Shown piece after piece: positions 1-47,700 of a stretch of 64,000 bases of DNA. Position numbers and translations under genes: made by a program. The DNA is from Epithemia pelagica. Taxonomy: Eukaryota > Protista > Bacillariophyta. Each line of letters opens with the position of its first letter. Positions within the stretch are counted from its first letter, which is position 1. The notes under the pieces were generated by a model that did no database searches, was not told the DNA's origin, and saw only the letters and a list, made by a program, of their open reading frames with translations. The stretch lies in NCBI GenBank assembly GCA_946965045.2, contig OX337241.1:2728001-2792000 (forward strand). Reading direction: 5' to 3'.

Positions 1-276
1 GTTCCATTTCCCAATTTCAGTGATGTTGTGTTTGGGGATTTGCAACCGAAAGCGAAGTTGCCCAATCAACTGAGCTGTACGTGGGCAGCGACCGACGCAG
101 AACGAGCCCACCTTAACAAAAGACCAGAAGCTGAAAATGAAGAAAGCACAAACGACAATGAAAAGGAGAATGACCACGACCACTACAACTCGAGCCTAGT
201 TCGCCAAGCGACGTTCGCGTCAAGAACCTTCCACCAAAATATGGTTGCTACCATGCACATGACCCCCGGGTATTAG
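1..276 (+). CDS. 3' end (partial) of unknown protein, upstream tandem copy of the 2277-3508 gene
   Basis: Frame is open from base 1 (VPFPNFSDVVFGDLQPK...MHMTPGY*). It matches the C-terminus of ORF 2804-3508 at offset 3232. Confidence 0.6.
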   Translation, partial: VPFPNFSDVVFGDLQPKAKLPNQLSCTWAATDAERAHLNKRPEAENEESTNDNEKENDHDHYNSSLVRQATFASRTFHQNMVATMHMTPGY

Positions 277-393: not shown

Positions 394-1800
394 TTATTGA
401 TTCTCGTCTTTCAGTGTTTGGGAATATTCAGCAAGCCACGAACGAATGATTGCCGTATAGCGGTCATATTCATCGTGTACCTTTTTGGGAGCCTTCTGGT
501 TACACGACAAGTAAATCTGCGTCCATTTTCCAGATGGAATTTTGCCGTTTATCATGTTCAAGGGTTGGTCAAAAGTGTACATACCCAGCGCGTAGGGTTT
601 GTCGGTGTCAGACTCCTCGTAGTACGCCACAAGGAGGCACTTTCCGGAATTGACTTTGTCCGCGTACATTGCAGCGCAATTCTTCAAAGCAATTCCCATG
701 GCTGCGATTGCATGGGATGTTCGCAGAACCCTGCACTTGCCGGAGTCAGAAAGCTGAAGCAAATGATCATACCTGACTAATGCTTTATGGTTCAGCTGCG
801 CTTGAATAGCCCGATCCCGAATGTAGTTAACCAGCTGACGGACATTCAGACTCTCCCAGTGTTCCGGCCAAGCTTCGTTGTACTCTAGTTCATCAATGGA
901 ACCAAGGTTTTTTAACCATTCGGTGTAGTACTTGATGAGGTGCTGACGCGGAGGGCTGTCCTCTGGGGACTGCAGGATTCTCTCAATTTGTTTCCACTCG
1001 TGGGTATTGGCGGTGGGGAAATATGCTTGTATTCGCAGAGAGGTTGGGTGAGGAAACCAGTATGGACTTTCACCTTTCGTGCCAGCACAGATTCCTCGAT
1101 TGATGTCGCGGCGAATAATATCGAGGCAATCACAACCACGTTCCCGATCTTGGTCCAGAAGAGACTGTTTTAGCCCTGTGGTTCTGGCTATTCTTTCCAA
1201 AAGTCGAGCCGGTGCATCGAACGACTCGTGCACCAAGAGGCGATGAATTAGATCTCCTTTTTTCATGCCTGAAGCCTTGGCACCAATCTCTTTCGAAATT
1301 TTCTTCAAATTTACAGCAGTTATGTAGAAGTCGACCATGCTAAACCAAAAATCCGCTTTCCGGCTTGCTACCCAGTTGCGATAGGTTTCCTCAATGTCGA
1401 AAGAGCCGAGGCCACTGATGAAGAGGTCCTCGCCTCGACTGTATTGCCGCCACTCTTTCAGATGGCAAGACTGGATATTACTTATTTGCATTTCCAAGCA
1501 TACCCGAGGAATGCCACATATCTTCTCCAGCGTGCTGAGCACTTGTTGGTCCTCCTTGTCCACCAGATGATGGACGGGCACAATTGCCTGGTAAAGATCC
1601 GGGGAACTCCAAGGTGGCAGAGCGTGCTCGATGGCATCATCCAGTAGTAAAGTCCGGGGCGACAGTTTGCTCGACGCCGGTGAAGTCTGCGACTGCGACG
1701 CAGCTGAGCTACTAGACAGTGGCCTTAATAATGCGGATACCCTTGTCGCCCGAAAGGAGAGCCCTGCACACGAAGATCGATGCCAAACAAAGGCAGCCAT
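394..1800 (-). CDS. PcfJ-like domain protein with SAP/Rho_N-like HeH motif and putative mitochondrial presequence, copy 1 (~468 aa)
   Basis: Long ORF with probable ATG at 1800 (MAAFVW). The C-terminus RVLRTSHAIAAMGIALKNCAAMYADKVNSGKCLLV...KPYAL...Q...CN resembles the PcfJ-like (PF14284) core. TAVNLKKISKEIGAKASGMKKGDLIHRLL resembles SAP/Rho_N. The N-terminus is R/S-rich and free of acidic residues. Confidence 0.65.
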   Translation of the reverse strand: MAAFVWHRSSCAGLSFRATRVSALLRPLSSSSAASQSQTSPASSKLSPRTLLLDDAIEHALPPWSSPDLYQAIVPVHHLVDKEDQQVLSTLEKICGIPRVCLEMQISNIQSCHLKEWRQYSRGEDLFISGLGSFDIEETYRNWVASRKADFWFSMVDFYITAVNLKKISKEIGAKASGMKKGDLIHRLLVHESFDAPARLLERIARTTGLKQSLLDQDRERGCDCLDIIRRDINRGICAGTKGESPYWFPHPTSLRIQAYFPTANTHEWKQIERILQSPEDSPPRQHLIKYYTEWLKNLGSIDELEYNEAWPEHWESLNVRQLVNYIRDRAIQAQLNHKALVRYDHLLQLSDSGKCRVLRTSHAIAAMGIALKNCAAMYADKVNSGKCLLVAYYEESDTDKPYALGMYTFDQPLNMINGKIPSGKWTQIYLSCNQKAPKKVHDEYDRYTAIIRSWLAEYSQTLKDENQ

Positions 1801-2276
1801 GGCTTTCCATTTATCCGGCAAGATGACTTTGGTCTGCAAGATTACTCGAAAACCTGAAAAAGACACGGTTACTTCAAAACCTGAGATGTGCCCCGCATAA
1901 AAATTGTGCGCGCAGGCTGGGTATTGAGGCGGCATGGCGTGTTAGCGATACACCCCATCATCCACTCATCGACCAAAATGTACTCACTTTTTGTAGCTTC
2001 AACTCTTACAACCCAACATACTTCTCATCGCTCGGGCGTGATCCTTCTCCGTGACAGCGAGAAACTTTCTCGCAGAACGCAGACTTGAAATTTGAAGACG
2101 ACCAGACACAAGAACCGTGTGGTACCACAACAAACGAACCTGGCATTCGCAGATACAAACAAACCCAATCGGTACAAACAATCCGTACCATTGACAACGT
2201 GAAAGCAGAAAGGCAGTAATTCGATGCGATCCAAGTCTGTCGTTCCCGTGCCACAAAACTCATTCTCGTTGGAAAA

Positions 2277-3508
2277 ATGGAGAACAAAGAGAATGACCAG
2301 TCGAACGTAGCCATGACGAATGAAGAGGCCCCAACCGATGCTACCGTCGCTTCCACGCTGTCAGACATGAATGCGGCGCTTGGTGCTCTAACGGAGCAAA
2401 TACAACGGATGGCCGCCAAACAGGATTCAATGTCAGAAACGATGGCTACTCGAGCCGATATGGCCATTACTAGCCGGAAACTGGACCGCCTTTTGGTGGC
2501 CACTCCTGCTGCTGCCATCCCGGAGGGCGATTTTGTTCTATCCCCGCCCCGAGGGGAGTTTGCCCGTGCTGTGTTAAAGGGAGGTCGGTAGACGTTTTCA
2601 CTCGTGAAGCACCGCTCGAGTGAAGACAACGACGAATACAGCTACTTTGTAGTGTGCTGTGCACACTGTTTACTGCGACACTGGTTTGAGGAAGCGGAAG
2701 CCGACAACACTATCAATTCGTTGTTTCTGCAGGTTCAAACCAAAACTGCCAATTCTGTGTTTCTTCACGTACCGAAGTAAATTGTGGATGTTATGCCAAT
2801 TCTGTGTTTCTTCAAGTACCGAAGCAAATTGTGGATGTTGCTAGACAAGTTGGTTTTGTTTTGGGGGAGGATGACAAACTGCGAGACTTTGTCGCATTCG
2901 AAATCGACCTGGACGGTGTAAATCCATTGGAGTTTAACAAGGAAGATGCTCTCGATTGGCCTGATAGCAACCCAGGGCCTGTCAATCTTAGTCTTCCAAA
3001 TTCCACAGCGAGACATTCTCACAGTGGACCCGTTCAAGGGCAAAACGTTGTCCATGGAGAAGATGGTAACTTCTATTTTTCTGCCGAAACCAGAGAGAAA
3101 GGCAACGGCGGTACTGTCATGCTTTTGACAAACATGGCAGTGATAGAAAAGAATCAAGTGTCTGTCATTGGACTCTTCAAGGGGACGAAAGCCACTAGAA
3201 CTTCCGGAGCATATGAAGAAAGAGGTGTTATTGTTCCATTTCCCAATTTCAGTGATGTTGTGTTTGGGGATTTGCAACCGAAAGCGAAGTTGCCCAATCA
3301 ACTGAGCTGTACGTGGGCAGCGACCGACGCAGAACGAGCCCACCTTAACAAAAGACCAGAAGCTGAAAATGAAGAAAGCACAAACGACAATGAAAAGGAG
3401 AATGACCACGACCACTACAACTCGAGCCTAGTTCGCCAAGCGACGTTCGCGTCAAGAACCTTCCACCAAAATATGGTTGCTACCATGCACATGACCCCCG
3501 GGTATTAG
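2277..3508 (+). CDS. Unknown protein, probably two exons (2277-2583, 2733-3508; ~360 aa), N-terminal coiled coil
   Basis: ORFs 2277-2591 and 2804-3508 join in frame through a GT(2584)...ttctgcAG(2732) intron. The C-terminal part is conserved in the tandem copy at 1-276. Confidence 0.5.
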
Positions 3509-3625
3509 TGCTTATGATGGGGGCTGTGCAATGGCCATAACCAGCGTCCAGGGAATGTATGGTGCTGCGGGCACTTCCCGCTTGTCTACTTCCGGAGTCT
3601 CTAAATGGCAATTGCCTCTAATGAT

Positions 3626-5017
3626 TTATTGATTCTCGTCTTTCAGTGTTTGGGAATATTCAGCAAGCCACGAACGAATGATTGCCGTATAGCGGTCATA
3701 TTCATCGTGTACCTTTTTGGGAGCCTTCTGGTTACACGACAAGTAAATCTGCGTCCATTTTCCAGATGGAATTTTGCCGTTTATCATGTTCAAGGGTAGG
3801 TCAAAAGTGTACATACCCAGCGCGTAGGGTTTGTCGGTGTCAGACTCCTCGTAGTACGCCACAAGGAGGCACTTTCCGGAATTGACTTTGTCCGCGTACA
3901 TTGCAGCGCAATTCTTCAAAGCAATTCCCACGGCTGCGATTGCATGGGATGTTCGCAGAACCCTGCACTTGCCGGAGTCAGAAAGCTGAAGCAAATGATC
4001 ATACCTGACTAATGCTTTATGCTTCAGCTGCGCCTGAATAGCCCGATCTCGAATGTAGTTAACCAGCTGACGGACATTCAGACTCTCCCAGTGTTCCGGC
4101 CAAGCCTCGTTGTACTCTAGTTCATCAATGGAACCAAGGTTTTTTAACCATTCGGTGTAGTACTTGATGAGGTGCTGACGCGGAGGGCTGTCCTCTGGGG
4201 ACTGCAGGATTCTCTCAATTTGTTTCCACTCGTGGGTATTGGCGGTGGGGAAATATGCTTGTATTCGCAGAGAGGTTGGGTGAGGAAACCAGTATGGACT
4301 TTCACCTGTCGTGCCAGCACAGATTCCTCGATTGATGTCGCGGCGAATAATATCGAGGCAATCACAACCACGTTCCCGATCTTGGTCCAGAAGAGACTGT
4401 TTTAGCCCTGTGGTTCTGGCTATTTCCAAAAGTCGAGCCGGTGCATCAAACGACTCATGCGCCAAGAGGAAATTAATTAGATCTCCTTTTTTCATGCCTG
4501 AAGCCTTGGCGCCAATCTCTTTCGAAATTTTCTTCAAATCTGCAACAGTTGTGTAGAAGTTAACCATCCTATACCAAAAATCCGCTTTCCGGCTTGCTAC
4601 CCAGTTGCGATAGGTTTCCTCAATGTCGAAAGAACCGAGGCCACTGATGAAGAGGTCCTTGCCTCGACTGTATTGCCGCCACTCTTTCAAATGGCGAGAC
4701 TTGATGTTGCAAATTTGCATTTCCAAGCACACCCGAGGAATGCCACAGATCTTCTCCAGCGTGCTGAGCACTTGTTGGTCCTCCTTGTCCACCAGATGAT
4801 GGACAGGCACGATTGTCTGGTAGAGCTCCGATGAACTCCAAGGTGGCAGCGCGTTTTCAATGGCATCATCCAGGGAAATACGTACCGACAATTTGCTCGA
4901 GGTCCGTGGAGTGTGCAACCGCGCTGAGATACCAGGCAGTTGGCTCAATTGGAATGCGCTTGTTGACCGAAAGGAGAGCCCCCCGCACGAAGATCCATGC
5001 CAAACAAACGTAGCCAT
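3626..5017 (-). CDS. PcfJ-like domain protein, copy 2 (~463 aa)
   Basis: Paralogue of 394-1800 with a near-identical C-terminal two-thirds and a diverged N-terminus. Probable ATG at 5017 (MATFVW). Confidence 0.65.
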   Translation of the reverse strand: MATFVWHGSSCGGLSFRSTSAFQLSQLPGISARLHTPRTSSKLSVRISLDDAIENALPPWSSSELYQTIVPVHHLVDKEDQQVLSTLEKICGIPRVCLEMQICNIKSRHLKEWRQYSRGKDLFISGLGSFDIEETYRNWVASRKADFWYRMVNFYTTVADLKKISKEIGAKASGMKKGDLINFLLAHESFDAPARLLEIARTTGLKQSLLDQDRERGCDCLDIIRRDINRGICAGTTGESPYWFPHPTSLRIQAYFPTANTHEWKQIERILQSPEDSPPRQHLIKYYTEWLKNLGSIDELEYNEAWPEHWESLNVRQLVNYIRDRAIQAQLKHKALVRYDHLLQLSDSGKCRVLRTSHAIAAVGIALKNCAAMYADKVNSGKCLLVAYYEESDTDKPYALGMYTFDLPLNMINGKIPSGKWTQIYLSCNQKAPKKVHDEYDRYTAIIRSWLAEYSQTLKDENQ

Positions 5018-5240
5018 TGATATCCAGATTTGTCGTCCATACATGGTAAGATGACTTTTGTTTTTTAATTTATTGTCTTTTGTTTGCAAGATTGCTCGAA
5101 AACCTGAAGTAGTTTTAAAACCTGAGTCGAGATGGCGCGGGGCAGGGAGCCGAACAAGGTACCACGACCATTGGTGATCTGACGTCATATTGTATACACA
5201 TTTACACATGTGTCTTGCTCCTGCTTTGCAATGGACTCAC

Positions 5241-5402
5241 TCACCCCCACCGATGTGCGGCGTTCCCCTCAAGTCTCAATTCGTCAAGAAAGGCCTGGGC
5301 TAATGTTTGCTTAGTGACTTTTGTTTCGCAGATCTCATGATTCACGGCAGCTTCTGTGGAATTGTGGTAATGGTTGTCTTGCTGTTGTTGTTCCTGTTCT
5401 TC

Positions 5403-5483
<81 letters not shown>

Positions 5484-5860
5484 TTGTGCTTGTTGGATGC
5501 ATTCGACGAATGAATCACCCAAGGCTTGGACATTGACTTGAGATGAATTTCGGCAAAGCCTGCCAAGGTTTGGTTGCTGTTCTTGGTTTGCCGATTCAAC
5601 AAATCATAGCGGGATTGTTTCCATCCAGCCGACGAGGCTCCTGTAGGACTGTAGCCCGTTTGGGTATCCAGTCGCTGGATATGGAATGCCCACGCTTTGG
5701 TACACTTTTGTTCCCGTTGGTGATGCGCCGTGTCTTGCGAAATGGCGGTAAAGAAGACACCATTCACGGGCCAATGTATAGGGTGGTGCGGATCTGGAAT
5801 CGGAGGATCGACTTGATAGAGGAGGCCAACACTGGGTACCTGACACAAACCACAATGCTG
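5241..5860 (-). pseudogene. C-terminal fragment of GT7-family gene, paralogous to 8844-9330
   Basis: The peptides WPVNGVFFTAISQDTAHHQREQKC...QTLAGFAEIH and SFVECIQ...DNHYHNST...TLAQAFLDE match the 8.8-9.3 kb locus. They are split over two frames, and the catalytic DVD/WGGEDDD region is absent. Confidence 0.7.
5405..5483. repeat. (CAT)~26 microsatellite (poly-Asp on the minus strand)
   Basis: Uninterrupted cat repeat; reads as about 26 GAT codons in ORF 5241-5522. Confidence 0.97.
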
Positions 5861-8843: not shown

Positions 8844-10504
8844 TTACCCATGGACGACGTTCCCTTTGGCTGAAACGCCATTCGTTAGGAAGGGCCTGAG
8901 CTATTGTTTCGTTTGTGGCTCTGGTTTTGCAGATCCCATGATTCGCGGCTACTTTGTGGAATTGTGGTGATGGTTGTCTTGTTGTTGTTGTTCTTCCTGT
9001 TCTTCTTCTTCTTTCTCCTCCTTTTCTTCGATGCATTCGACGAAGGAACCGCCCAAGGCTTGGACATTGACTTGAATGGCAATGTGATGAATTTCGGCAA
9101 AGCCTGCCAAGGTTTGGTTGTGGTTCCAGGTTTGTCGATTCACCACATGATAGCGGGATTGTTTCCATCCACCCGCCGAGGCTACGGTAGGACTATAGCC
9201 CGTTTGTTTCTCCAGTCGCTTGATATTGGAGGCCTACGCCTTGTTACACTTGCGTTCCCGTTGGTGATGCGCCGTGTCTTGCGAAATGACGAGAAAGACA
9301 CCATTCACGGACCACGGACTGTTTGGGTCGATGGGGTGGTGTTTGCTGCAATCGGCCAACCCCATGTAGGCGACACGTTTGTGCAAATCATCGTCTTCGC
9401 CACCCCATCCTTGAAATTGAAAATCCATACCATTGATACTGGCCCAATATTGAATGTGCATTGTCACGGCACCTCCCATAATGGTGGGATACTGGAGCGC
9501 AAAGTTTAGACTTTCTGGTCGGACCGTCAAATGGGTGGGTCTGGAACACTGGTGATAGGGTACTTGCGCAAAAAATCCCGGAACCAAATCGACGTCGTGT
9601 TGAATGACACAAGCAGTGTCGGTCGGCGACGTGATCCAATCCGGCATTCATCAGCAAGGCTCGGTTAAACAATTGGTTGTCGGCTTGTTCGATAATGTAC
9701 ACAAGGCAAACGAATGATGTTGCATCTTTGGATTGCGGTGATAATGGTACTGCAAATAAGGGGACATGTATTCGAGAAAGCTTTCCAAATGATGGGCACG
9801 ATTGCGGAAGGGCACGACAATGGCATGCCGTTGTGGTTGTGGTTGTGGTCGTGGTCGTTGTTGTTGTGATGGAGACTTTGGCGTGTGCGTAGAGATTTGG
9901 TAGTGCTGTCCTCCTCGTGAATAGTTGTTGTTCTTGTTCTTGTTCTTGTTCTTGTTCTTCTTCTTGTAGTTGGAGTGGTTGGGTGGTGCCAGAGCATGCA
10001 AGACCCAGGAACGTTGTGTTTCTTGAGCCACGTGGCGACAAATTTGTGCCAAGGACTGATGGGATCGGTTTCGAAACATGGTCTTTTGTTGGGTAAACTT
10101 GCCAAGATATGCTCCAGCCATGGTCGACGGTTCAGGACCCGTTGCGTCCAGTTGATGATTGGAGACAAGGTAGTACTGCTACTAATAGTACTACTCCTTG
10201 CTCTTGTGGATTGGGAAGAATTGAAATTTTGAGAGGAGTCGGCAACCCAAGAGTGAGTCGTCCGAGAGCGTTGCAAAAGACGGATTGTGGTTTCGATCGA
10301 ACATCAATCAAGTTGTACCACAACAAGACTGGTCAGTTGAAGTTCAATGACAATCGAAACGAGTACCATTCGTGAGTTTCTTGTGTTTCGACTCTTGTTG
10401 ATGTTCTCTGGTTGCCGCTTGGCTTGGTCCCTGTCGGCCGGCGACGACATGGTAAGGATGAGAGGGTTGTCTTGTCGTCGTCGTGCACTCCCACCACACA
10501 GGAG

Positions 10505-11815: not shown

Positions 11816-14683
11816 ATGACGACGATGACAACGACTGTGGCGACAAGGCCCACCTCCACGGTTGTGCCAACTCGGTCGATGGGGGTTCCCCGACTGTTGC
11901 GGCTGCTTCCTGGTGGGATGCTTGTGTGGGTTCTTCTTTTTGTTGTTGTTGGTGGTGATGCACCACGTGGAATAGCGCAAGCTGTCGCCGCTCGGACGAG
12001 TCGAATGTCACCATCACCACAGCAGCAACAGCAACACGAACCAGAAGATGGTGGTCGAGTCCTCCAGCTACAGTACGGCAAAAAGAAGATGAAGACGAAG
12101 AGCTGGAGGGATTCGCCCGTTCCCACCATGGCACCACCCACTAGCCCCAATACACCGCCATTTACGAATCCTACTCCCACCCAGGCACCCCTGGTCAATC
12201 CCGGGACCTGGTACACCAGTATCGTCGTGCCCATGGTTCCTCCTCCTGCACCACCATCTCCTCATCATCATCCTCCTCCTCATTCGTTCTTCTCCACCTC
12301 GGTTCGGCCGCACAGGGATCATCCAAACGACAAGCAGCAGCAACCACACGGGAAAAAAGAGTCCGTTCCCACGAATAGTCAAAGGAAGAGTACCAAGGAA
12401 TCCAAGCAATTTTCTTTGCCCAAACGCTCCTCCTCCTTGCCCACAAAAAACAAGAAGCAAGGTCACCCCCAAAAGAGGACCCGCACCCAGAAGCGCCAGG
12501 GCGGCAAAAAGGAGCAGCAGCAAAAGCAGCATCCCCCTGGCAAACACGACGACCGGACACCGTCATTCCTCCAATCGTCTCCCACGCAGCAGCATCGTAC
12601 CACCATGGCTCCTACTAGTACTCCCCCGGTGGTGATTCCAGTCCCCACCACACCGTCTTTTCCTTCGTCTGCTCCTTCTTCTTCTGTTTTGTTGGGGATG
12701 GGAGGAAAACAGGCAGCATCATCTTATTCGGGGGGAAAGAAACAAGAATCCTCGGGTAAAAAACAAGGCGTCCATCATAACCGTGAGAATGGCAAGAACC
12801 TGTCGAGAAAGGGCAAGAAAGGGGACCAGAACCGTAGCAGCGGTTCCTCGAATCGGATCAAGAGTACCAAACAAGTCAAGAGTGGGGGCAAACAACCAGG
12901 TGACAAGGATCATGACGACGACAAGAACCTGTCGAGAAAGGGCAAGAAAGGTGACCAGAGCCGTAGTAGCGGTTCCCCAAACCACCGGATCAAGAGTACC
13001 AAACAAGGCACGAGAGGGGGCCAACAGCAAGGCGACAAGGATAACGACGACGACAACCTGTCGAGTCATGGCAAGAAAGGTGACCAGAGCCGTAGCGGTT
13101 CCCCGAATCGTATCAAGAGTACCAAAGAGCGACAAAAGAGTGGCGGGAAACAGCAAGGCGACAAGGATCATGACGACGACAAGAACCTGTCGAGTCATGG
13201 CAAGAAAGGTGACCAGAGCCGCAGTAGCGGTTCCCCGAATCGTATCAAGAGTACCAAACAAGGCAAGAGAGGGGGCAAACAACAACAAGGTGACAAGGAT
13301 CATGGCGACAACAACCTGTCGAGTCATGGCAAGAAAGGTGACAAGCGCAGCAGTAGCGCTTCCCCGAATCCTATCAAGAGTACCAAACAAGGCAAGAGTG
13401 GGGGCAAACAACAAGGCGACAAGGATAACGACAGCAACAACAAACTGTGGAGAAATGGCAAGAAAGGTGACCAGAGCCGCAGTAGCGGTTCCCCGAATCG
13501 TATCAAGAGTACCAAACAAGGCAAGAGCGGGGGCCACCAGCAAGACGACAAGGATCACGACGACGACAAGAACCTGTCAAGTCATGGCAAGAAAGGTGAC
13601 AAGAGCAGCAGTAGCGGTTCCCCCAACCGTATCAAGAGTACCAAACAAGCCAAAAGTGGGGGCCAACAGAAAGGCGACAAGGATCATGACGACGACAAGA
13701 ACCTGTCAAGTCGTGGCAAGAAAGGTGACAAGAGCAGCAGTAGCGGTTCCCCCAACCGTATCAAGAGTACCAAACAAGGCAAGAGAGGGAGCAAACAACA
13801 ACAAGGTGACAAGGATCATGGCGACAACAACCTGTCGAGTCATGGCAAGAAAGGTGACCAGAGCCGTAGCATTGCTCCGAAGCATATCAAAAGCACCAAA
13901 GAAGCCAAGAGTGGGAAAGGTGGTGTCCCACCACCGCACATTCCACCAAATCGCCCACCAACAACTTCCACTCCCACGGTTCGCACAGTTCCGCCTTTTT
14001 CACTTCCACAGCCAATGGTATCCTCGGCCCCTTCCTCGGCCCCTTCCTCGTCGCCGTCGTCCTTGTGGCCGGTCGCACCTTCCAGGACTGCGGTCGAACG
14101 AACGACCAATCCAACGACAACGACAACGAATTGGCCATCCCGCAGTCCAACGACTTCTCCTCCGCCCTCCTCCACGACGACGACGACAACCACAACAACA
14201 ACAACAAGTCCACCTCCGTCCTCGTTCTTCTTCCAGAGTAGTATCCAGGCAGCTGCATCCCAGGCCCCAGGGTCCCAGAATGTGGAACCGACAACGCTTC
14301 CGACTGCCAATGGCGACCCACAATCGTTGGTTGGTCTGGAGGCGTTGGATTCCGAACCACCGACCGAACAACAACAACAACAACAAGTCGAGAATGTGCC
14401 GGCCGTGACTGCGGCCTCTTCGTTGGATTCGACCGGGGACTGGAGTGATGGTAAAAGTGTGGCCTGGGTGGTTCTTGGCAGTGCCCTTGTCCTGGGTGTC
14501 AGTGTGGCTGCCATTCGTTTCTACTACCAATGGCGTCGTCGTCGTCGTCGTCGACAGGGTCCACAGGGTCGGAACCACCCGTACTTCTACCACCAGCACG
14601 ACACGACACGATTCGAACCATTGAGAGCCGCCTGGGTAGAACCGTTCGAGGACCACGACAATGACGACGACACAGTGTCATGA
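11816..14683 (+). CDS. Silaffin/SAP-like type-I membrane protein 1 (signal peptide, RXL, K/S/G/D-rich repeats, P/T/S stalk, TM, basic tail)
   Basis: ORF of about 955 aa from ATG 11816. Features: hydrophobic MLVWVLLFVVVGG, RVLQ..YGKKK, about 9 repeats of ~43 aa, TM SVAWVVLGSALVLGVSVAAIRFYY, then WRRRRRRR. Confidence 0.75.
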   Translation: MTTMTTTVATRPTSTVVPTRSMGVPRLLRLLPGGMLVWVLLFVVVGGDAPRGIAQAVAARTSRMSPSPQQQQQHEPEDGGRVLQLQYGKKKMKTKSWRDSPVPTMAPPTSPNTPPFTNPTPTQAPLVNPGTWYTSIVVPMVPPPAPPSPHHHPPPHSFFSTSVRPHRDHPNDKQQQPHGKKESVPTNSQRKSTKESKQFSLPKRSSSLPTKNKKQGHPQKRTRTQKRQGGKKEQQQKQHPPGKHDDRTPSFLQSSPTQQHRTTMAPTSTPPVVIPVPTTPSFPSSAPSSSVLLGMGGKQAASSYSGGKKQESSGKKQGVHHNRENGKNLSRKGKKGDQNRSSGSSNRIKSTKQVKSGGKQPGDKDHDDDKNLSRKGKKGDQSRSSGSPNHRIKSTKQGTRGGQQQGDKDNDDDNLSSHGKKGDQSRSGSPNRIKSTKERQKSGGKQQGDKDHDDDKNLSSHGKKGDQSRSSGSPNRIKSTKQGKRGGKQQQGDKDHGDNNLSSHGKKGDKRSSSASPNPIKSTKQGKSGGKQQGDKDNDSNNKLWRNGKKGDQSRSSGSPNRIKSTKQGKSGGHQQDDKDHDDDKNLSSHGKKGDKSSSSGSPNRIKSTKQAKSGGQQKGDKDHDDDKNLSSRGKKGDKSSSSGSPNRIKSTKQGKRGSKQQQGDKDHGDNNLSSHGKKGDQSRSIAPKHIKSTKEAKSGKGGVPPPHIPPNRPPTTSTPTVRTVPPFSLPQPMVSSAPSSAPSSSPSSLWPVAPSRTAVERTTNPTTTTTNWPSRSPTTSPPPSSTTTTTTTTTTTSPPPSSFFFQSSIQAAASQAPGSQNVEPTTLPTANGDPQSLVGLEALDSEPPTEQQQQQQVENVPAVTAASSLDSTGDWSDGKSVAWVVLGSALVLGVSVAAIRFYYQWRRRRRRRQGPQGRNHPYFYHQHDTTRFEPLRAAWVEPFEDHDNDDDTVS
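12794..13920 (+). repeat. Coding tandem repeat, ~129-nt unit x ~9 (NLSSHGKKGDQSRSSGSPNRIKSTKQGKSGGKQQGDKDHDDDK)
   Basis: Eight full units and one partial unit are readable in the translation. Confidence 0.92.
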
Positions 14684-15594
14684 TCACCGCCACAACAACA
14701 AGACGACACGAGGTAAAGACTGCTCCTGTTTCTGGTTGTTTGTCGACTCGTGTGTAGAAAACTCAATCTATAACAAATCAAACAGAAACTCCAATTCTTG
14801 TGTATTTTGAAGAAGAAGAAGAAAAGCCTCCCATTAGGAACAGCAACGTCCGTCTGGAACCGGCCGAAAGACAATACACCAAGGCACCAAGGATCCTCCT
14901 TGGTTCCGTCCTGTCTGCCAGTGAACCAAACGGAACGGTTTGTCCAGCCGGTTTCCCAGTCAGTCACTCACTCACTCGTCATTGACAAACCAACAATGAC
15001 CGAGGACTGTAGTTTCTTCCGAGCGGACTCTTTTCAACGGAACAGAAACCAATAGAATTAAGGTGTCATTCGTTCCAAACAAACGACGACAACAAGATGA
15101 TGATCCATTCCACCAACGGACGTTTGACTTGCCAGGGAGCGTCGGCAGTGTGGACAGGGCAGTTCTCGTTCCGAGCCAGATGGAACAGGCAATGATTTCC
15201 CGAGTCCAGGAACGGTACGACTCTTTGAGAAGTGATTTTGTCCTCCTTTTCATAGTTCATCACGAATGCCAACACCATTGGAGGAGGAGGAGCGCTTGCG
15301 GCTTGCGAATCAAGAACCACGACTCTCTGTGTTGGATGGTACTATGGTTTGCTTCAAAATAAGGACGCCAATCACGATTGCACAACAAACGAGAAACCTT
15401 TGGAGGACAACTCTAAAGGAGGCGAAGTAGTTGGCCTCCGTCCAGCCAACGATTCTACCAGCCAATCACAACATATATCCCAATCTGGACGACCTGAACG
15501 GAACACGAAAGCAGGAAAAACTAGCCCCAAATCAAGAATCGTTGACAAGGTCATTTTTCAAAAATTTCGGTACAACGTCTGGCGTTCCAGCTAC

Positions 15595-15608
15595 TTTGGT
15601 CTTGGTCC
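15595..15608 (+). promoter_or_regulatory. Shared upstream motif TTTGGTCTTG(GTCC)
   Basis: The same 10-mer occurs at 10909-10918, 11226-11235 (minus) and 18172-18181, i.e. upstream of each of the three paralogous membrane-protein genes. Confidence 0.35.
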
Positions 15609-16011
15609 AGCGTGCGGTCCCTAAGTGAGTGTTGGTCGTGATTCACTAAGTAAGCATAGACAAGACCAATGTTCGTCGGTCCCACTTACAAACGGCGCTT
15701 TGGTCCGTTTTGAACGCGGGATCCCGCACGCCCGTCGAGCCTGTGCTTACTGTCCCACAAAACTATCAACGATTCCAACAAAGCAACAACATGAATGAAT
15801 GAATGACATGGAGATCCCTACTCTAGAGCCAAATGCCGCGGCTTTGCCGCAGTCCCGGTCCAATCTTCAAACTCCAAAGCACATACAGAAACTAGGGAAC
15901 CGACCACCAGCCAGGAGGATGAGAGCGTCCCACAATTTCACGAGACCCTCCCTTGGCATTCAACGACGTATCGATTACACTACGAATTTATTTCATCTCT
16001 CCAGGACGACC

Positions 16012-17361
16012 ATGATGAACCGCCACTCTCCATCCGGAACCACCACCAGACATCAATGTGTCGCGGTAGTGTGCTGGATACTGTCGCTGACGACGGTGGT
16101 TTTGACAGTTCATGCTGTTCCACAGTCACCACCACAGCAACAATACGAAGAAGCACCATTGCGGGCGAGAGTCCAGGAGGAACACTCCTCTTACATCCAG
16201 TACAGCAACGACTTCCAAGAGTGGTTGGACGAACGACGACAACAACGACGACACTTGAGTGGCAAAAAGGAGAGCAGCAACGGCAAAAAGGAAGCGCAGT
16301 ACGACTACGACAGTCCTACACCGAAACCAGTGACGACTGCCAAGCCCATTTCCTCTCCGACCGACTATCCTTCCTTTTCCCCCAAGCCAACGGCCATGCC
16401 CGTTGCCAGCAAGTATTCCTCCTCGGGCAAAAAGGAGCCGAGCGGCAAGTCCTACTACCAGCAGGACCACACCACGAGCAAGCCCACGGCCAAACCCCAC
16501 GATGACTCTTCTTATTATCATGATTCGGGCAAGAAAGAATCGGGCAAAAAGGAAGCGGGGTACAGCCCCACGGCCAAACCCACGACCAAACCCACCTCCA
16601 AACCCAATGGCGTTCCGACCCCGTCACCCACCGCAACGGACGACGATTCGTATGATTGTTGGGGCAGTGGCAAAAAAGAAGCGAGTCACTGTCCGAGACG
16701 ACCAACCGGAAAACCGACCTCCAAACCCACGGGCAAAAAAGAGTCGATTCGCCAACCGACACCGCATCCGACCGGCAAACCAACTCCTAAACCCACGCCA
16801 AAGCCGACTCCCAAACCCACGCCAAAGCCAACTCCCAAACCCACATCCAAGCCAACCGCCAAGCCCACTGCCACCACCACAATGGCACCGACGGTACTTG
16901 TACGCACAGGACTGACGGGTTCCACTTCGTCGCCGCCGACGGTGGTCCCCAGTGCAATGCCCAGCGCTCATCCCAGTAGCGTCCCCAGCGAGCGCCCGTC
17001 GCAATCTCCCAGTGCCAAACCCACCACGGCTTCCACCACGTCGTCTCCGACGTTGTCTCCCTCGACCGGTCCCACGTCGGGCAGTACGACAGTCGTGACT
17101 CAAGCCGTGCAAGCGGAACCGACGGAAACGGCGCAAACCGACCGGAGTTCACCCGAGTCGGTCAATCCGGCATCGTCGTCGTCATCGTCCTCGGCATTCA
17201 AGGGGACTCCGTGGTTGATTGCCAGTGCCGGATCCTTGGTGGTGGTGGCCGCCTTGGCCAATGAATGGCGTCGACGACGACAGAGTTGTACCACTGGTAA
17301 CGCGGCCGCCAATTCGACGGAACCCTATCAAGAATTGCCCGAACCGGGCGTCTCGTCGTAA
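16012..17361 (+). CDS. Silaffin/SAP-like type-I membrane protein 2 (~449 aa)
   Basis: ATG 16012 precedes the signal peptide VAVVCWILSLTTVVLTVHA. Then RRHLSGKKES, recurring SGKKE and PTxKP repeats, TM PWLIASAGSLVVVAALA, EWRRRR and PYQEL. An upstream ATG at 15799 is also in frame. Confidence 0.78.
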   Translation: MMNRHSPSGTTTRHQCVAVVCWILSLTTVVLTVHAVPQSPPQQQYEEAPLRARVQEEHSSYIQYSNDFQEWLDERRQQRRHLSGKKESSNGKKEAQYDYDSPTPKPVTTAKPISSPTDYPSFSPKPTAMPVASKYSSSGKKEPSGKSYYQQDHTTSKPTAKPHDDSSYYHDSGKKESGKKEAGYSPTAKPTTKPTSKPNGVPTPSPTATDDDSYDCWGSGKKEASHCPRRPTGKPTSKPTGKKESIRQPTPHPTGKPTPKPTPKPTPKPTPKPTPKPTSKPTAKPTATTTMAPTVLVRTGLTGSTSSPPTVVPSAMPSAHPSSVPSERPSQSPSAKPTTASTTSSPTLSPSTGPTSGSTTVVTQAVQAEPTETAQTDRSSPESVNPASSSSSSSAFKGTPWLIASAGSLVVVAALANEWRRRRQSCTTGNAAANSTEPYQELPEPGVSS

Positions 17362-18567
17362 GAACAGACAGGGCAGCTTGGTCGTTTGGCACAAAAGAGT
17401 GTGCCTACGTCTTGCTTGGGTGACATGTATGCAATTGACCCTGCAAGCAACATTTGGTAGTATAGTAGAATGTAGTTTTTTCTTCAATGTCTCTCTTGTG
17501 TTTGTGGAGGCCACAAGTCACACTTTGGCAACCCGACCAAGTCCTTTTCGTCACCAGTCTTCATGTAATTTTGCAACGAGAAAGACGAGAAAGAGTTCAA
17601 TCCGTCCTGCTGCAGTAGAAACGACTCCGCCATGCTGTTTTGGAAGCAATCATGGTGTTGGTTCATCGTTCATGGAGAGTCACTCTCTTCTCCTAGCTAG
17701 CAACACAGAATGATGATGATGATGTTGTTTGATGCGAGTGTCAAGAATCCATCGATTCGGAAGCATCCACATCATGGTATCCAAAAAAATTGGGAATCGT
17801 GCGTTTTTGGGGTCTATCGTTTTATGGAATGGCAGAGAGATGCCGCTCTGTCTTGTGGTGATGATTGCTGTGTCTTGTTCAATGAAAAACAGCGAGCACT
17901 GCGACCATTGGCTTTGTCGTAGTGTGAAACAATGTATCGTGAAGAACCCGTGCAAGAGTCCCTAGTCCTCGGACACTACGAGTCGCTCCACGAGAGTGAG
18001 AGTGGATCCATATTCGTGTGCATGGACTCCATGGTCCGAGCAGAGGCAGGCACTGTGAAAAAGTAAAGGAACGCAGGGTGTCCATGGTCCGAGATGGGAC
18101 AAGAGATGCACATGGCTCGAGTCCGTTGAAAACGCTAGTGTAGCCGTCATCATGTGTTTTATCCTTAAGTGTTTGGTCTTGTACGGGATCGCGCTCCTGC
18201 ACTCACGATGGACCTTGGATGGTCTTTCGTTGACCCACACGAACGGCACAGACCGGGACTTGCATCAAGACTATCGATATCCGTTGAATCACATTCAAAC
18301 CTATGTGTTTGTAGATAGTAATGTTGAACCAATTAGATCAACGGATGCACGCCTGTCGACTCTGTGTCCAATTCATTCGGACCACAAAAATGACGCGCCA
18401 CCACCAAAGTTGCCATCTTTTGCTTCTACGCGATTGGACCAAGAGGAGGAATTCCTCGCCACCTTCTCGCTTTTACACATTTTCTCTCTCGAGTCTCATA
18501 ATTTTGGTTTCAGCTCTCAGCTCTTGGCCACGGACCGAACAATCACAAACGACCTAAATTTTCAACC

Positions 18568-21490: not shown

Positions 21491-23005
21491 ATGGCGGAAG
21501 TGGAACGTGCAATTCCGAAACGCCAAGTGTTGGATCCCATGGCCGTGGTAAAGGAGTATGCCGCCTTGCCGCGGTTGGAATATCGAACGATTGCCGGTGT
21601 GAATGGTCCCTTGGTGATTTTGGATCACGTCAAATTGCCCAAATTTGCCGAAATTGTCAATTTGCGTCTCGGCGATGGCACTTTGCGGTCGGGTCAAGTG
21701 TTGGAAGTGGCCGGTCACCGTGCCGTCGTGCAAGTCTTTGAAGGGACGGCCGGCATTGACAATCGCAAAACCGTGTGTGAATTTACCGGCGATGTGTTGA
21801 AAATGGGTGTGAGTGAAGAAATGTTGGGTCGTTCCTTTAATGGTTCCGGAAAGGTGATTGATTCGGCACCCAAGGTGTTGGCCGAAGCCTATTTGGACAT
21901 TAACGGCCAACCCATTAATCCCAGCAGTCGCGATTACCCCAAGGCCATGATTCAAACGGGAATTTCGGCCATTGATGTCATGAACAGTATTGCGCGGGGA
22001 CAAAAAATCCCCATTTTTTCCGCCGCCGGCTTGCCCCACAATGAAGTGGCGGCCCAAATTGCCCGTCAAGCCAGTTTGGTCCAACAAAAGGATACCATGG
22101 ATGGCCATGAAGAAAACTTTGCCATTGTCTTTGGCGCCATGGGGGTCAATATGGAAACGGCCCGCTTTTTCCGTTCCGACTTTGAAGAATCGGGGGCCAT
22201 GCAACGGACGGCTCTCTTTTTGAACTTGGCCAATGATCCCACCATTGAACGTATCATTACGCCCCGCTTGGCCTTGACCACGGCCGAGTATTTGGCCTAC
22301 GAACGCGATTTGCATGTCTTGGTCATTTTGACCGACATGAGTTCCTATGCCGATGCCCTGCGCGAAGTGTCGGCCGCTCGTGAAGAAGTCCCCGGTCGTC
22401 GTGGTTACCCCGGATACATGTATACCGATTTGAGTACCATTTACGAACGGGCCGGTCGTGTCGTGGGCCGCAATGGGAGTATTACCCAATTGCCCATTTT
22501 GACCATGCCCAATGACGATATTACCCATCCCATTCCCGATTTGACGGGCTACATTACCGAAGGTCAAATTTATTTGGATCGACAATTGCATACCAAAGGT
22601 ATTTTCCCGCCCATTAATGTGTTGCCCAGTTTGAGTCGATTAATGAAGTCCGCCATTGGCGAAGGCATGACCCGATCCGATCATGGCGCCGTGAGTAATC
22701 AATTGTATGCCAGTTATGCCATGGGCAAGGATGTCATGGCCATGAAGGCCGTCGTTGGAGAAGAAGCCCTTAGTATGGAAGATCACTTGTACCTCAACTT
22801 TTTGGAACGCTTTGAAGGCAAGTTTGTCAGTCAAGGTCCCTACCAGGCGCGTACTATTTTTGAATCCCTCGATTTGGCCTGGTCCATTTTGCGAGCCTTT
22901 CCCAAGGAACTGCTCAAAAAGATTCCCAAAAAGACCCTCGACAAGTTTTATGCCCGTCGTCGGGAAGCCGCTGAAGATCGCAACCAAGCCGATGGATCGG
23001 CCTAA
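21491..23005 (+). CDS. VHA-B: V-type proton ATPase subunit B
   Basis: Intronless 504-aa ORF with hallmark motifs [61 protein letters not shown] and [16 protein letters not shown]. Confidence 0.98.
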
Positions 23006-44727: not shown

Positions 44728-47700
44728 ATGGCTACGGTAGACGACTTATCATTAAAGCATCTACGTTTGCAGACGTTCGATGGAAAGCATGAAAATTTCC
44801 AAGTTTGGTTCATGAACTTTCGTTCATATGCAGTGGCGCATGGATTCAAGTCGGCGATCAGCAAAGATGGGCCTGACACTGACTTGCCTTTGCGGGATGA
44901 TTCACCTCTCGATACCGATGCAACAGTGGCGGGAAAACAAGCTTTGGCCAAGAAGAAGAATGCGGCAGCCTTTTGTGCCTTGAACCTTGCGATGACAAGC
45001 CCTCAGATGATCCGAATGTTGACCGAAGCTCAGACGGATGAATGGCCCGATGGTTTGGCCTGGAAGGTGATTGCTGCATTGCACAAGAGATTTAAGCCGA
45101 CAGACACTGTATCGAAGATCGAGATGCGAAGGTTGTTGGGTAAAGTGGCCATGACCAAGAAAGAAGATCCGACTACTCTGTTCAGCCAAATTGGGCAGAT
45201 TGAAAATATGTTCAACGTGACGGTTGATGATGAGGAGAAAATTGCGATCGCAATTGAGGCAGCTCCGCGAGAATACCAGTCGATTATTGTGTCCGAGCAA
45301 CGCCAGCGGGGTGCGACATTGACGTCGGACCACATTGAAGACGTTATGCGGTTGCACTGGCGTGCACTTTATGGTCAGCGCACCAAGAATTTCCTGCAAG
45401 ACGACGGAGACGAAGACAACGAAATTGGTCTCGCAGCTGGAGACAAACAAGGTTCAACGTCAGGAAAGTCAAAATCAAGCAAGAAAAGTGGGAAAGGAGA
45501 CGGCAAGAAGACTTACAAATTCAAGGGCAAGTGCCATCATTGCGGAAAGGTCGGGCACAAGGCAGCAGACTGCTGGATAAAACCCGAAAACAAAGATAAG
45601 AGGCCCGAATGGTACAAGGTCGAGGAGCATGGCAAAGTAGCAAAGGACAGTGGTGAGACGGATGTCGAAGGCAGCGTCGAAATCATCACTTGTGCGGTCG
45701 ACTTACCTCCACGGAACATGGTATGGTTAGATACCGATGACGAGGACGATCACAACGAATACGAAGAACTCCCTGACTCGGTACTCGATCACGAGATCGT
45801 GAGCGACACCGACGACGAAGAGACAAGAGGCGACGACGAAGACCTCGATTGGATCAGTTTGTTGGGTGAAGAGGACGATGAAAGCATCCACGACTCGTTG
45901 ATTGTTGTATCAGATGACGACGAAGAAGAAGTGGACAGGGAGATTTGTTGTGCTGGTATGGCGAAGGAAATGGAATTCCCAGCCATCCAAAGTCTCCTGA
46001 CAGATCCGAATGTATGGATCGCAGACACAGGAGCGACGACGCATATGACTCCGTTTCGCGTCGGAATGGTTAATGTGAAGAAACAACATGATGAGAAAGG
46101 GATCACCATGGGCAACAATAAAACAGAAAAGGTCGTGGAAGTTGGCAACTTACCTGGAGTGTTGCACGACAAGAATGGGAACGCGCTCAACCGTGTGAAG
46201 ATGCAAGATGTCAGCGTGGTTCCAAGCGGTGGATTCAACCTGTTCAGCATCACGAAAATGCAGATGAGTGGATGGAAATTGGAAGGAGACAAACAGTCAA
46301 TCCGACTTACCAAGAATGGGCAGGAGATCATCTTCGATATCAAGATCCAAACGCCCAAGGGAGTGATTTTCGCCGCGTATTTTGAAAGGACCGAGTTGGG
46401 AAACGCAGCGACAAGTGAAGAGCAAATCAAAATGACAATGGAACAGGCTCATGAGAAACTGGGTCACATCGGAGAGAAAGCAGTAATCGAAACAGCCAAG
46501 AAACTTGGATGGAAACTTACCAAGACAACGATGCCAAAATGTGCAGCTTGCGCAGCTGGAAAGGCAAAACAGAAGAACTTGCCGCGAAATGAGAATGGAG
46601 AAGATGACAGGGAACACGATGACGAGAAACAACTTCGTGCTTACCTCGACATGGCCTCGATCAAGAAGAAGCAAGACATGCCAATTCCGTCGAAGCCGCA
46701 GTGGAGGATCTTGGTGGTCCACCCAAAAGTCCAGCTCAAGCTTTCCGAGTTCTATGATGCGAAAGATGAGATGCCAGAGGACACATGTGAGAAAATGGCA
46801 TTGATGAAACAACATGGTGTGTCCATCACTCACCTTCGGTTGGACAATGCAGGCGAGAACAAGGCCTTGCAGAAACGGTGTCAAAATGAAAAGTGGCAAC
46901 TTGGAATCCATTTCGAGTTCACTGCCCGTGATACACCCCAGCAGAACTCTATCGCTGAGGTGGGATTTGCTACCGTGATGAATCGAGCACGTGCGATGAT
47001 GCACCGCGCTAATATTCACATCGAAATCCGCTTCAAGTTGTGGCACGAGGCTTGCATGACGGCAACGCTTTTGGACGGCTTGGTTGTTGTGGATCATGGG
47101 GGAAGATCTGCGACTCGATACGAACACATTTGGGGGAAAGTGCCAACGTTCGCGAAACACTTGCGAATTTGGGGGGAAGCCGGAACGGTCAAGATCAAGA
47201 CTAAAACTTCCCCGAAATTAATGGACAAAGGTGTACATTGTTTCTTCGTTGGGTATGCACGTAATCATCCGGGTGACTGTTATCGGATGTTTGATCCCAA
47301 AACGGGTCGTGTTCGGGAATCACGCGACGTGACTTGGCTAAAGCGGCTATACTACAAGAAACCTCCTAATGCCAAGGAACTACAAACCAATCCAGTCGTG
47401 GATGCTGAGGCTGCATCGAATCACGGGGAGAGTCGCGGAAGTGGTCGCGAAAACGATGGCCAAGACGACCATGGCGGAAACGACAGCAATGTGAACGACA
47501 ACAACTCCAACAATGAATATGAACCGGATGATCCGATGCCTGAGGTCAACATGAGCACAGGCAATGACGAATCCACGGCTCCAGTGCGGAATATTGTGAT
47601 TCCGGAGCCTGATGAAACAACGACGACGCGAACAGGTCGTACCATACGAGCACCACAACGGTTGATTGCTGAAATTGGACAAGCCGTGTTGTCCAAGGCC

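Follow-up and report, generated by a model that had tools for sequence, protein, structure and literature searches.

PcfJ-like proteins are frequently encoded by conjugative plasmids and large phages. Their reference in this study is the 447-residue PcfJ protein of plasmid pCF10 from Enterococcus faecalis, together with its relatives from Enterococcus and Vagococcus, and no mention of eukaryotic PcfJ proteins turned up in the literature searched for PcfJ. Mitochondria, in turn, replicate and transcribe their genomes with phage-derived proteins, including the T7-like RNA polymerase, Twinkle and DNA polymerase gamma, which are examples of phage genes that eukaryotes have put to use in an organelle, with a presequence added. 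Here, we describe two genes of the diatom Epithemia pelagica that lie on the minus strand of a 64,000-nucleotide stretch of DNA (hereafter the window) and encode closely related proteins of 468 residues (paralogue 1, 394-1800) and 463 residues (paralogue 2, 3626-5017). They belong to a eukaryotic branch, not previously described, of the known PcfJ family. What is new is that the similarity spans a scaffold of three conserved blocks (A-B-C), that tailed phages contain the nearest non-eukaryotic relatives, and that the diatom proteins add an insert and a different N-terminus to this scaffold.

PcfJ homology and the tailed-phage scaffold

An exhaustive HMMER search with an alignment of the paralogues retrieved 123 relatives at E ≤ 1e-3, including 56 at E ≤ 1e-10. 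When the family members were scanned singly, 52 of 126 matched the PcfJ model PF14284 at E ≤ 0.01, with a best value of 1.6e-8, and one relative (P0015) exceeded its gathering score (26.7 bits versus 25). A comparison of the algal family with an Enterococcus-type PcfJ profile using hhalign yielded a Prob value of 83.5 and an E-value of 8.3e-6 over 187 columns, which span blocks B and C and thus extend beyond the 147 positions of the Pfam model; against pCF10 PcfJ alone, the E-value was 2.5e-4. In this alignment, the diatom segments LKNCAAMY and SCNQKAP correspond to LRHCVGSQHY and KCNRQEVP of pCF10 PcfJ. The PcfJ signature L-x-[HN]-C-[VA]..Y, followed by (C)N..P at the extreme C-terminus, is present in the diatom proteins, and its N, C and Y residues are invariant in alignment A5. 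The two systems also share a hydrophobic strand and the elements P..[AT]L and QI..(C)N..P, and in pCF10 PcfJ, as in the diatom proteins, this core is located at the very C-terminus of a polypeptide of ~450 residues, with homology extending over ~190 columns to include block B. However, the diatom genes are nuclear and eukaryotic rather than plasmid-borne, their products remain below the Pfam gathering score and possess an extra insert and leader, and block A lies outside the alignment to the Enterococcus proteins.

A language-model feature search placed the proteins among clusters of which 29 of the nearest 30 share the family set of the top matches (PF14284 PcfJ), with those shown being mostly viral. 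A word-index protein search returned only near-identical copies from two assemblies, with a family alignment as the query adding almost nothing, whereas PHROGs and NCBIfam gave, for both proteins, at most a weak match to an unnamed PHROG family (1e-4), and a sequence search of the PDB produced no meaningful match. The first-pass annotation of this DNA had proposed a PcfJ-like domain, to be checked by profile and structure searches. Both types of search led to PcfJ, and the assignment is sound at the family level because the profile, fold and transitive Pfam lines agree, although the direct Pfam match of the two diatom proteins is sub-threshold. We are therefore highly confident in the PcfJ homology of the family and its affinity to phage proteins, taken together.

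At 15874-17984 of plasmid pCF10 (locus L002), pcfJ overlaps by 10 bases with a gene annotated as a member of the Cas9 inhibitor family AcrIIA9, on the opposite strand from the transfer genes. This arrangement is a hint that bacterial PcfJ may operate in establishment or anti-defence.

The HMMER matches within the family are not limited to the C-terminal domain but fall into the three blocks. Block A (profile positions ~70-160; W..i.RG.DLFI.GLG.FDI) comprises residues 83-152 of paralogue 1 (1345-1554, minus strand), including the motif W..Y.RG.DLFISGLGSFDI, which is common to tailed-phage proteins; the family comparison places it at 4574-4783 (minus strand) in paralogue 2. Block B (~240-330; GYF...P.RQHLI.Y..W....DEL..WPE) corresponds to residues 245-336 of paralogue 1 (793-1068, minus strand), which read ..AYF..P.RQHLIKY..W....IDEL...WPE.W and align with the part of Enterococcus PcfJ that precedes the Pfam domain, and by the same family comparison to 4025-4300 (minus strand) in paralogue 2. 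Block C, the PcfJ core (~335-455; L.VLRS...L.NCA..Y...LV.L..KP.ALG...W.QI...N..PS), covers residues 344-460 of paralogue 1 (421-771, minus strand; RVLRT...LKNCA..Y...LVA...KPYALG...W.QI..SCN), which are modelled with a predicted local distance difference test (pLDDT) score above 90, and lies at 3653-4003 (minus strand) in paralogue 2.

The same scaffold is found in tailed phages. The lowest-ranking HMMER matches (E 4e-7 to 4e-4) include proteins of 344-416 residues in which block A is accompanied by block B or C. One of them, P0095, is encoded on a 62-kb contig with genes for a large terminase (phrog_675, 2e-91) and a portal protein (1.5e-79), and two others (P0120 and P0107) lie amid densely packed small genes on a single strand. 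When IMG/VR was scanned for the pattern of block A, three viral contigs were identified (L010-L012) whose proteins are colinear with the algal family profile (E 1e-20 to 1e-23 in a small search), and one of these bears the sequence WKDIKRGKDLFIKGLGSFDI, which is exactly the algal block A consensus. In L011 and L012, a terminase of the family seen on the P0095 contig is encoded a few kilobases away. The phage proteins (P0095, P0107, P0120, the L010-L012 proteins and BFVD entries) thus resemble the diatom proteins in their whole A-B-C order, are near-identical in block A and provide the best fold matches. They differ in being only 340-410 residues long, in lacking the insert of ~100 residues that carries a SAP-like motif in the diatom proteins, and in carrying, instead of the presequence-like leader, ~120 unrelated residues at the N-terminus. 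Relative to the phage scaffold, alignment A5 shows that the diatom proteins have ~100 additional residues separating block A from block B, as well as a different N-terminus. A tblastn search of GenBank phages with the C-terminal half gave no significant match. As a separate observation, three independent tailed-phage contigs (L003, L011 and L012) have a conserved neighbourhood, with the PcfJ-like gene located 4-5 kb from the phrog_675 large terminase on the opposite strand.

In a quick, unrooted tree of blocks B and C, nine phage-type rows grouped together (91 in the Shimodaira-Hasegawa-like approximate likelihood ratio test), with the diatom copies apart (95) and P0110 off on a long branch elsewhere. 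Judging from these comparisons, the nearest non-eukaryotic relatives of the family are tailed-phage proteins, and because these share the entire scaffold, a phage or bacterial origin of the diatom genes is plausible. Instead of a PcfJ domain joined to a SAP motif, as the first-pass annotation had it, the diatom proteins correspond to a complete phage-type A-B-C protein with an insert and a new N-terminus.

The predicted structure points in the same direction. An AlphaFold model based on an alignment of 125 sequences had a pLDDT of 81.7 and a predicted template-modelling score of 0.75, with pLDDT values above 90 across blocks B and C; a model based on five close paralogues (pLDDT 38) was discarded. 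Nearly all of the best Foldseek matches in BFVD were phage proteins labelled 'PcfJ-like protein' (E 1e-5 to 6e-4, 230-450 columns), and a shape search of the ESM Atlas gave template-modelling scores of 0.46-0.48 to bacterial and phage PcfJ clusters over model residues 1-415, the entries in both resources being predicted models throughout. Among solved structures, Foldseek found nothing at E ≤ 1e-3, and PDB searches did not find a PcfJ structure.

An exhaustive structural comparison also superimposed block C (model residues 304-410) on the first ~110-115 residues of many GNAT acetyltransferases, with Z scores of up to 7.5, where values below 8 possibly reflect a common arrangement, and Foldseek recovered GNAT families from the PDB with a probability of up to 0.87 at an E-value of about 0.5. 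The match covers only the N-terminal half of the GNAT fold, the sequence identity is 4-15%, and an acetyl-CoA-binding motif was not seen after the aligned strand. Given the partial coverage, the Z scores and the lack of an evident acetyl-CoA loop, membership in the GNAT family was rejected, and the relation suggested by the model appears to be one of resemblance only.

The family is both diverse and widespread within one algal lineage. It comprises over 100 clusters at 50% identity, and its named members, all from transcriptomes, belong to two diatoms, Stauroneis constricta and Cyclophora tenuis, and to one pelagophyte, Aureoumbra lagunensis. The contigs of other members carry sparse gene calls of eukaryotic type, such as those for a triose-phosphate translocator and a cyclophilin. 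Given its occurrence in diatoms and a pelagophyte, the family is old in ochrophyte algae and not a recent diatom acquisition, and because of this spread, any transfer and retargeting would be ancient. The notion that the genes were horizontally acquired or viral thus remains plausible in view of the shared phage scaffold, but any such acquisition would not be diatom-specific. A broad eukaryotic distribution had been named as speaking against it; the family extends beyond a single diatom, yet it is not broadly distributed across eukaryotes.

Gene models, N-terminal leader and inserted motif

The longest open reading frames (ORFs) on the minus strand that contain the two genes extend over 394-1935 (513 residues, stop codon at 394-396) and 3626-5209 (527 residues). 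The paralogues are 85% identical across these ORFs and 90% identical when counted from a shared methionine encoded at 1800 and 5017, respectively. As first noticed from the sequence, both copies contain the C-terminal motif LRTSHAIA..G.ALKNCAAMYADKVNSGKCLLV...KPYALG...SCN and the central helix motif LKKISKEIGAKASGMKKGDLI; a segment quoted as EELEYNEAW in fact reads DELEYNEAW. A third paralogue type is found in two copies 9.6 kb apart at locus L001, which belongs to a different assembly, from either the same organism or a sister of it. When read through, L001 keeps the leader MAAFVWH... behind an upstream stop codon, the start chosen by the gene caller being a false GTG, and the sequences upstream of the conserved methionine differ between the copies. 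These two features support the start codons at 1800 and 5017, as originally proposed, and led us to reject the longer alternatives starting at 1935 and 5209. Because the proteins align colinearly with all relatives, the genes appear to be free of introns.

The leaders that follow these start codons lack acidic residues. In paralogue 1, the leader comprises residues 1-52 (1645-1800, minus strand), is rich in arginine and serine and has no hydrophobic signal-peptide core; in paralogue 2, it comprises residues 1-48 (4874-5017, minus strand). Counted from the conserved methionine, the first acidic residue occurs at position 54 in paralogue 1 and at position 50 in paralogue 2, so that the arginine/serine-rich, acid-free N-termini described in the first-pass annotation are borne out by 53 and 49 residues without aspartate or glutamate, respectively. 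The highest Kyte-Doolittle window in the leader is 0.74 for paralogue 1 and 0.58 for paralogue 2, and the maximum hydrophobic moment of the paralogue 1 leader is moderate (0.50). Similar N-termini are common in the algal relatives, which start with 50-100 acid-free, arginine/serine-rich residues, unlike their phage counterparts. Of the 52 homologues whose N-terminus is complete, a crude rule classed 28 as mitochondrial-presequence-like, and the N-terminus of the transcript-derived Stauroneis protein has this appearance by eye. The best available evidence for organelle targeting, and the reason why we favour it, is that the acid-free, arginine/serine-rich property recurs without a conserved sequence. 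On balance, we consider it somewhat more likely than not that the leader directs import into mitochondria.

Some family members are built differently at this end. The metagenome relatives P0049, P0045, P0035 and P0067 possess a hydrophobic signal peptide followed by A|F. A signal-peptide-like core was seen in five relatives, including P0049 with the sequence CLA|FAP, and the N-terminus of P0045 contains SAAAFVP. The leaders of P0049 and P0045 look like the bipartite plastid import leaders of ochrophytes, and the family may thus have both mitochondrial and plastid branches.

The insert of ~100 residues between blocks A and B, which the phage relatives lack, contains a putative helix-loop-helix similar to the SAP, Rho_N and HeH motifs (PF02037 and PF07498 among them). 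It corresponds to residues 165-201 of paralogue 1 (1198-1308, minus strand) and to 4427-4537 (minus strand) in paralogue 2, follows the pattern L.K....iG.......KK.dLI..L and is modelled as a helix-loop-helix at model residues 115-140. When isolated segments of 70 residues were scored against the Pfam models (cut-offs 24.9 bits for Rho_N and 23.9 bits for SAP), the paralogue 2 motif matched Rho_N with an E-value of 2.9e-4 (21.2 bits) and SAP with an E-value of 0.026 (14.6 bits), and the paralogue 1-type motif matched Rho_N with an E-value of 0.013 (15.8 bits); in a scan of the full proteins, Rho_N was detected in one copy only (E 0.029). The diatom motif is weakly conserved outside the closest paralogues, and a looser pattern, hK...LRK......K..L, follows block A in many relatives. 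A role of this element in nucleic-acid binding is suggested by its resemblance to SAP and Rho_N. The motif reported in the first-pass annotation is thus present as a pattern in both copies, but it stays below the Pfam thresholds and lies in a low-confidence region of the model.

Other modules occur in relatives: P0039 contains a DUF4332 helix-hairpin-helix between blocks B and C (residues 303-428, 37.4 bits), which is also seen in P0051, and P0056 contains a Mind-bomb-type SH3 repeat (residues 169-229, 43.6 bits).

Collectively, the best explanation is probably that the two genes are intact, single-exon nuclear members of an ochrophyte algal protein family of the phage-type PcfJ-like kind, equipped with a leader and an insert. 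An ancestral PcfJ-like protein of the kind found in tailed phages and conjugative plasmids would have supplied the colinear A-B-C scaffold, which would then have gained the A-B insert with its SAP-like motif and the new N-terminus. The leader would bring the protein into the mitochondrion, and the inserted helix-loop-helix would attach it to organellar DNA or RNA, a part that the helix-hairpin-helix (DUF4332) module may play in other family members. There, the PcfJ core, in which Asp/Glu, Asn-Cys, Tyr, Gln and Asn residues are invariant, would perform the PcfJ activity on nucleic acid. We can only conjecture that the protein acts on organellar nucleic acid, a proposal that we hold tentatively. 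The full version, in which the members of a phage-derived ochrophyte family reach mitochondria, and plastids in some lineages, to act on organellar DNA or RNA, is more doubtful still.

Several observations weigh against this explanation. Both paralogues score below the gathering cut-off of PF14284 (16.6-16.8 bits versus 25, E 0.006-0.007), and the tree of blocks B and C is weakly resolved and unrooted, so that the direction of transfer is inferred. Compared with that of paralogue 1, the leader of paralogue 2 has a low hydrophobic moment (0.28). All SAP and Rho_N scores are below the gathering cut-offs, the motif matches are confined to the two local paralogue types and a partial SAP match (E 0.025) in one of seven distant relatives, and the modelled helices around the motif (115-122 and 131-140) have a pLDDT of only 52-59. 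Finally, a function for PcfJ is absent from the literature searched, which mentions it in annotation lists only, and the locus was found in four sequencing runs of a single study, in contigs of unrecorded type and none of them RNA.

The strongest competitor retains the same homology but places the protein outside the organelles, with the acid-free N-terminus being merely disordered and the protein acting in the nucleus or cytosol, for instance as a chromatin-associated SAP-type factor. In line with this idea, the paralogue 2 leader has a single arginine in its first 30 residues in addition to its low hydrophobic moment, 19 of the 52 complete homologues remained unclassified under the crude rule, and SAP motifs are generally typical of nuclear proteins. 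However, the acid-free, arginine/serine-rich character recurs in most complete homologues even though the sequence is unconserved, and the signal peptides followed by A|F in P0049 and P0045, which resemble ochrophyte plastid leaders, suggest organelles as a common destination. We thus regard a non-organellar protein as unlikely, if still deserving of serious consideration.

Duplication, selection and the remaining alternatives

The first-pass annotation had described the two genes as tandem. They indeed form part of a direct duplication, but they are not strictly adjacent, since a convergent ORF on the plus strand (2804-3508; 234 residues, without a Pfam match) lies between them. A self-comparison of the window showed that the duplicated unit has a length of ~3.2 kb, with 1-1800 and 3233-5017 sharing 95% nucleotide identity and the 3' flanks (1-300 and 3233-3532) being 100% identical. 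The convergent ORF was co-duplicated with the PcfJ-like gene: its last 276 nucleotides recur at 1-276 (ORF part 28-276, plus strand), and relatives with 60% identity adjoin both L001 copies (4755-5240 and 15460-15963). In this genome, the gene has been amplified, along with its convergent neighbour, by tandem segmental duplication.

The ratio of nonsynonymous to synonymous divergence (dN/dS) is 0.08 for the pair of L001 copies, compared with 0.41 for the window copies and ~0.6 for these against the L001 type, values that point to purifying selection on the copies. In the window copies, the synonymous divergence (dS) is 0.71 over the first 60 codons, where dN is 0.37 and the leader is fast-evolving, but only 0.15 in the central part and 0.02 over the final 238 codons. 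Given that the 3' flank is identical as well, this gradient indicates that the 3' halves of the window copies have been homogenised by gene conversion, of which such a gradient is typical; an assembly collapse of the identical part would be the alternative.

The duplication also bears on the idea that the genes are the cargo of a selfish or mobile cassette without a host function, which was amplified with the convergent ORF in a transposon-rich region. Tandem amplification in the window and, with a period of 9.6 kb, in the other assembly, the co-duplication of the neighbouring ORF and the presence of a Copia-type polyprotein gene at 44728-49389 are all compatible with such a cassette. Conversely, neither transposases nor integrases nor terminal repeats were seen flanking the duplicated unit, family members in other algae adjoin ordinary host genes without the convergent partner, and the family is old and diverse, with copies that appear to be under purifying selection, which together make this scenario improbable. 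That the PcfJ resemblance is spurious or the ORFs are decaying pseudogenes is hardly credible: the sub-threshold direct Pfam matches and the empty Foldseek search of the PDB (E ≤ 1e-3) are outweighed by the agreement of independent lines (profile-profile comparison, fold, transitive Pfam and the shared block A), and at least four copies have retained an intact ORF, with dN/dS below 1.

Genomic setting and implications

The locus is eukaryotic and nuclear, not part of a plasmid, an integrative and conjugative element or a phage. This setting is confirmed by a gene for V-type ATPase subunit B (21491-23005, plus strand; ATP-synt_ab, E 1.6e-78) and the Copia-type element (plus strand; RVT_2, E 3.8e-32), which share the window with the gene pair; the content of guanine and cytosine is uniform across the window. 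Several repeats lie beyond the duplicated unit. A long (GAT)n/(ATC)n microsatellite at 5346-5483 and 8946-9029 creates poly-Asp and poly-Met ORFs, and its surroundings of ~400 bases are present as a diverged copy 3.5 kb further on (5279-5773 versus 8880-9314, 83-84% identical). Moreover, a tandem repeat array with a ~129-base period (12793-13916, 84-87% identical) is located inside a long ORF.

Among the phage-derived proteins of mitochondria, the T7-like RNA polymerase, Twinkle and DNA polymerase gamma have known activities and are near-universal in eukaryotes, whereas the diatom PcfJ-like family bears no sequence relationship to them and has so far been seen only in ochrophyte algae. If the proposed targeting is true, the family would represent a further case in which a eukaryotic organelle has taken a phage gene into its service, here in a single algal lineage. 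If its members also act on organellar DNA or RNA, they would join the few phage genes that have been recruited to maintain organelle genomes and give the first lead on the function of PcfJ proteins, which are widespread on plasmids and phages. The eukaryotic branch offers an evolutionary clue to the role of the PcfJ domain. With its apparent purifying selection, its probable organelle leader and its added motif, it may also serve as a tractable system for studying this role, in diatoms that can be transformed and imaged.

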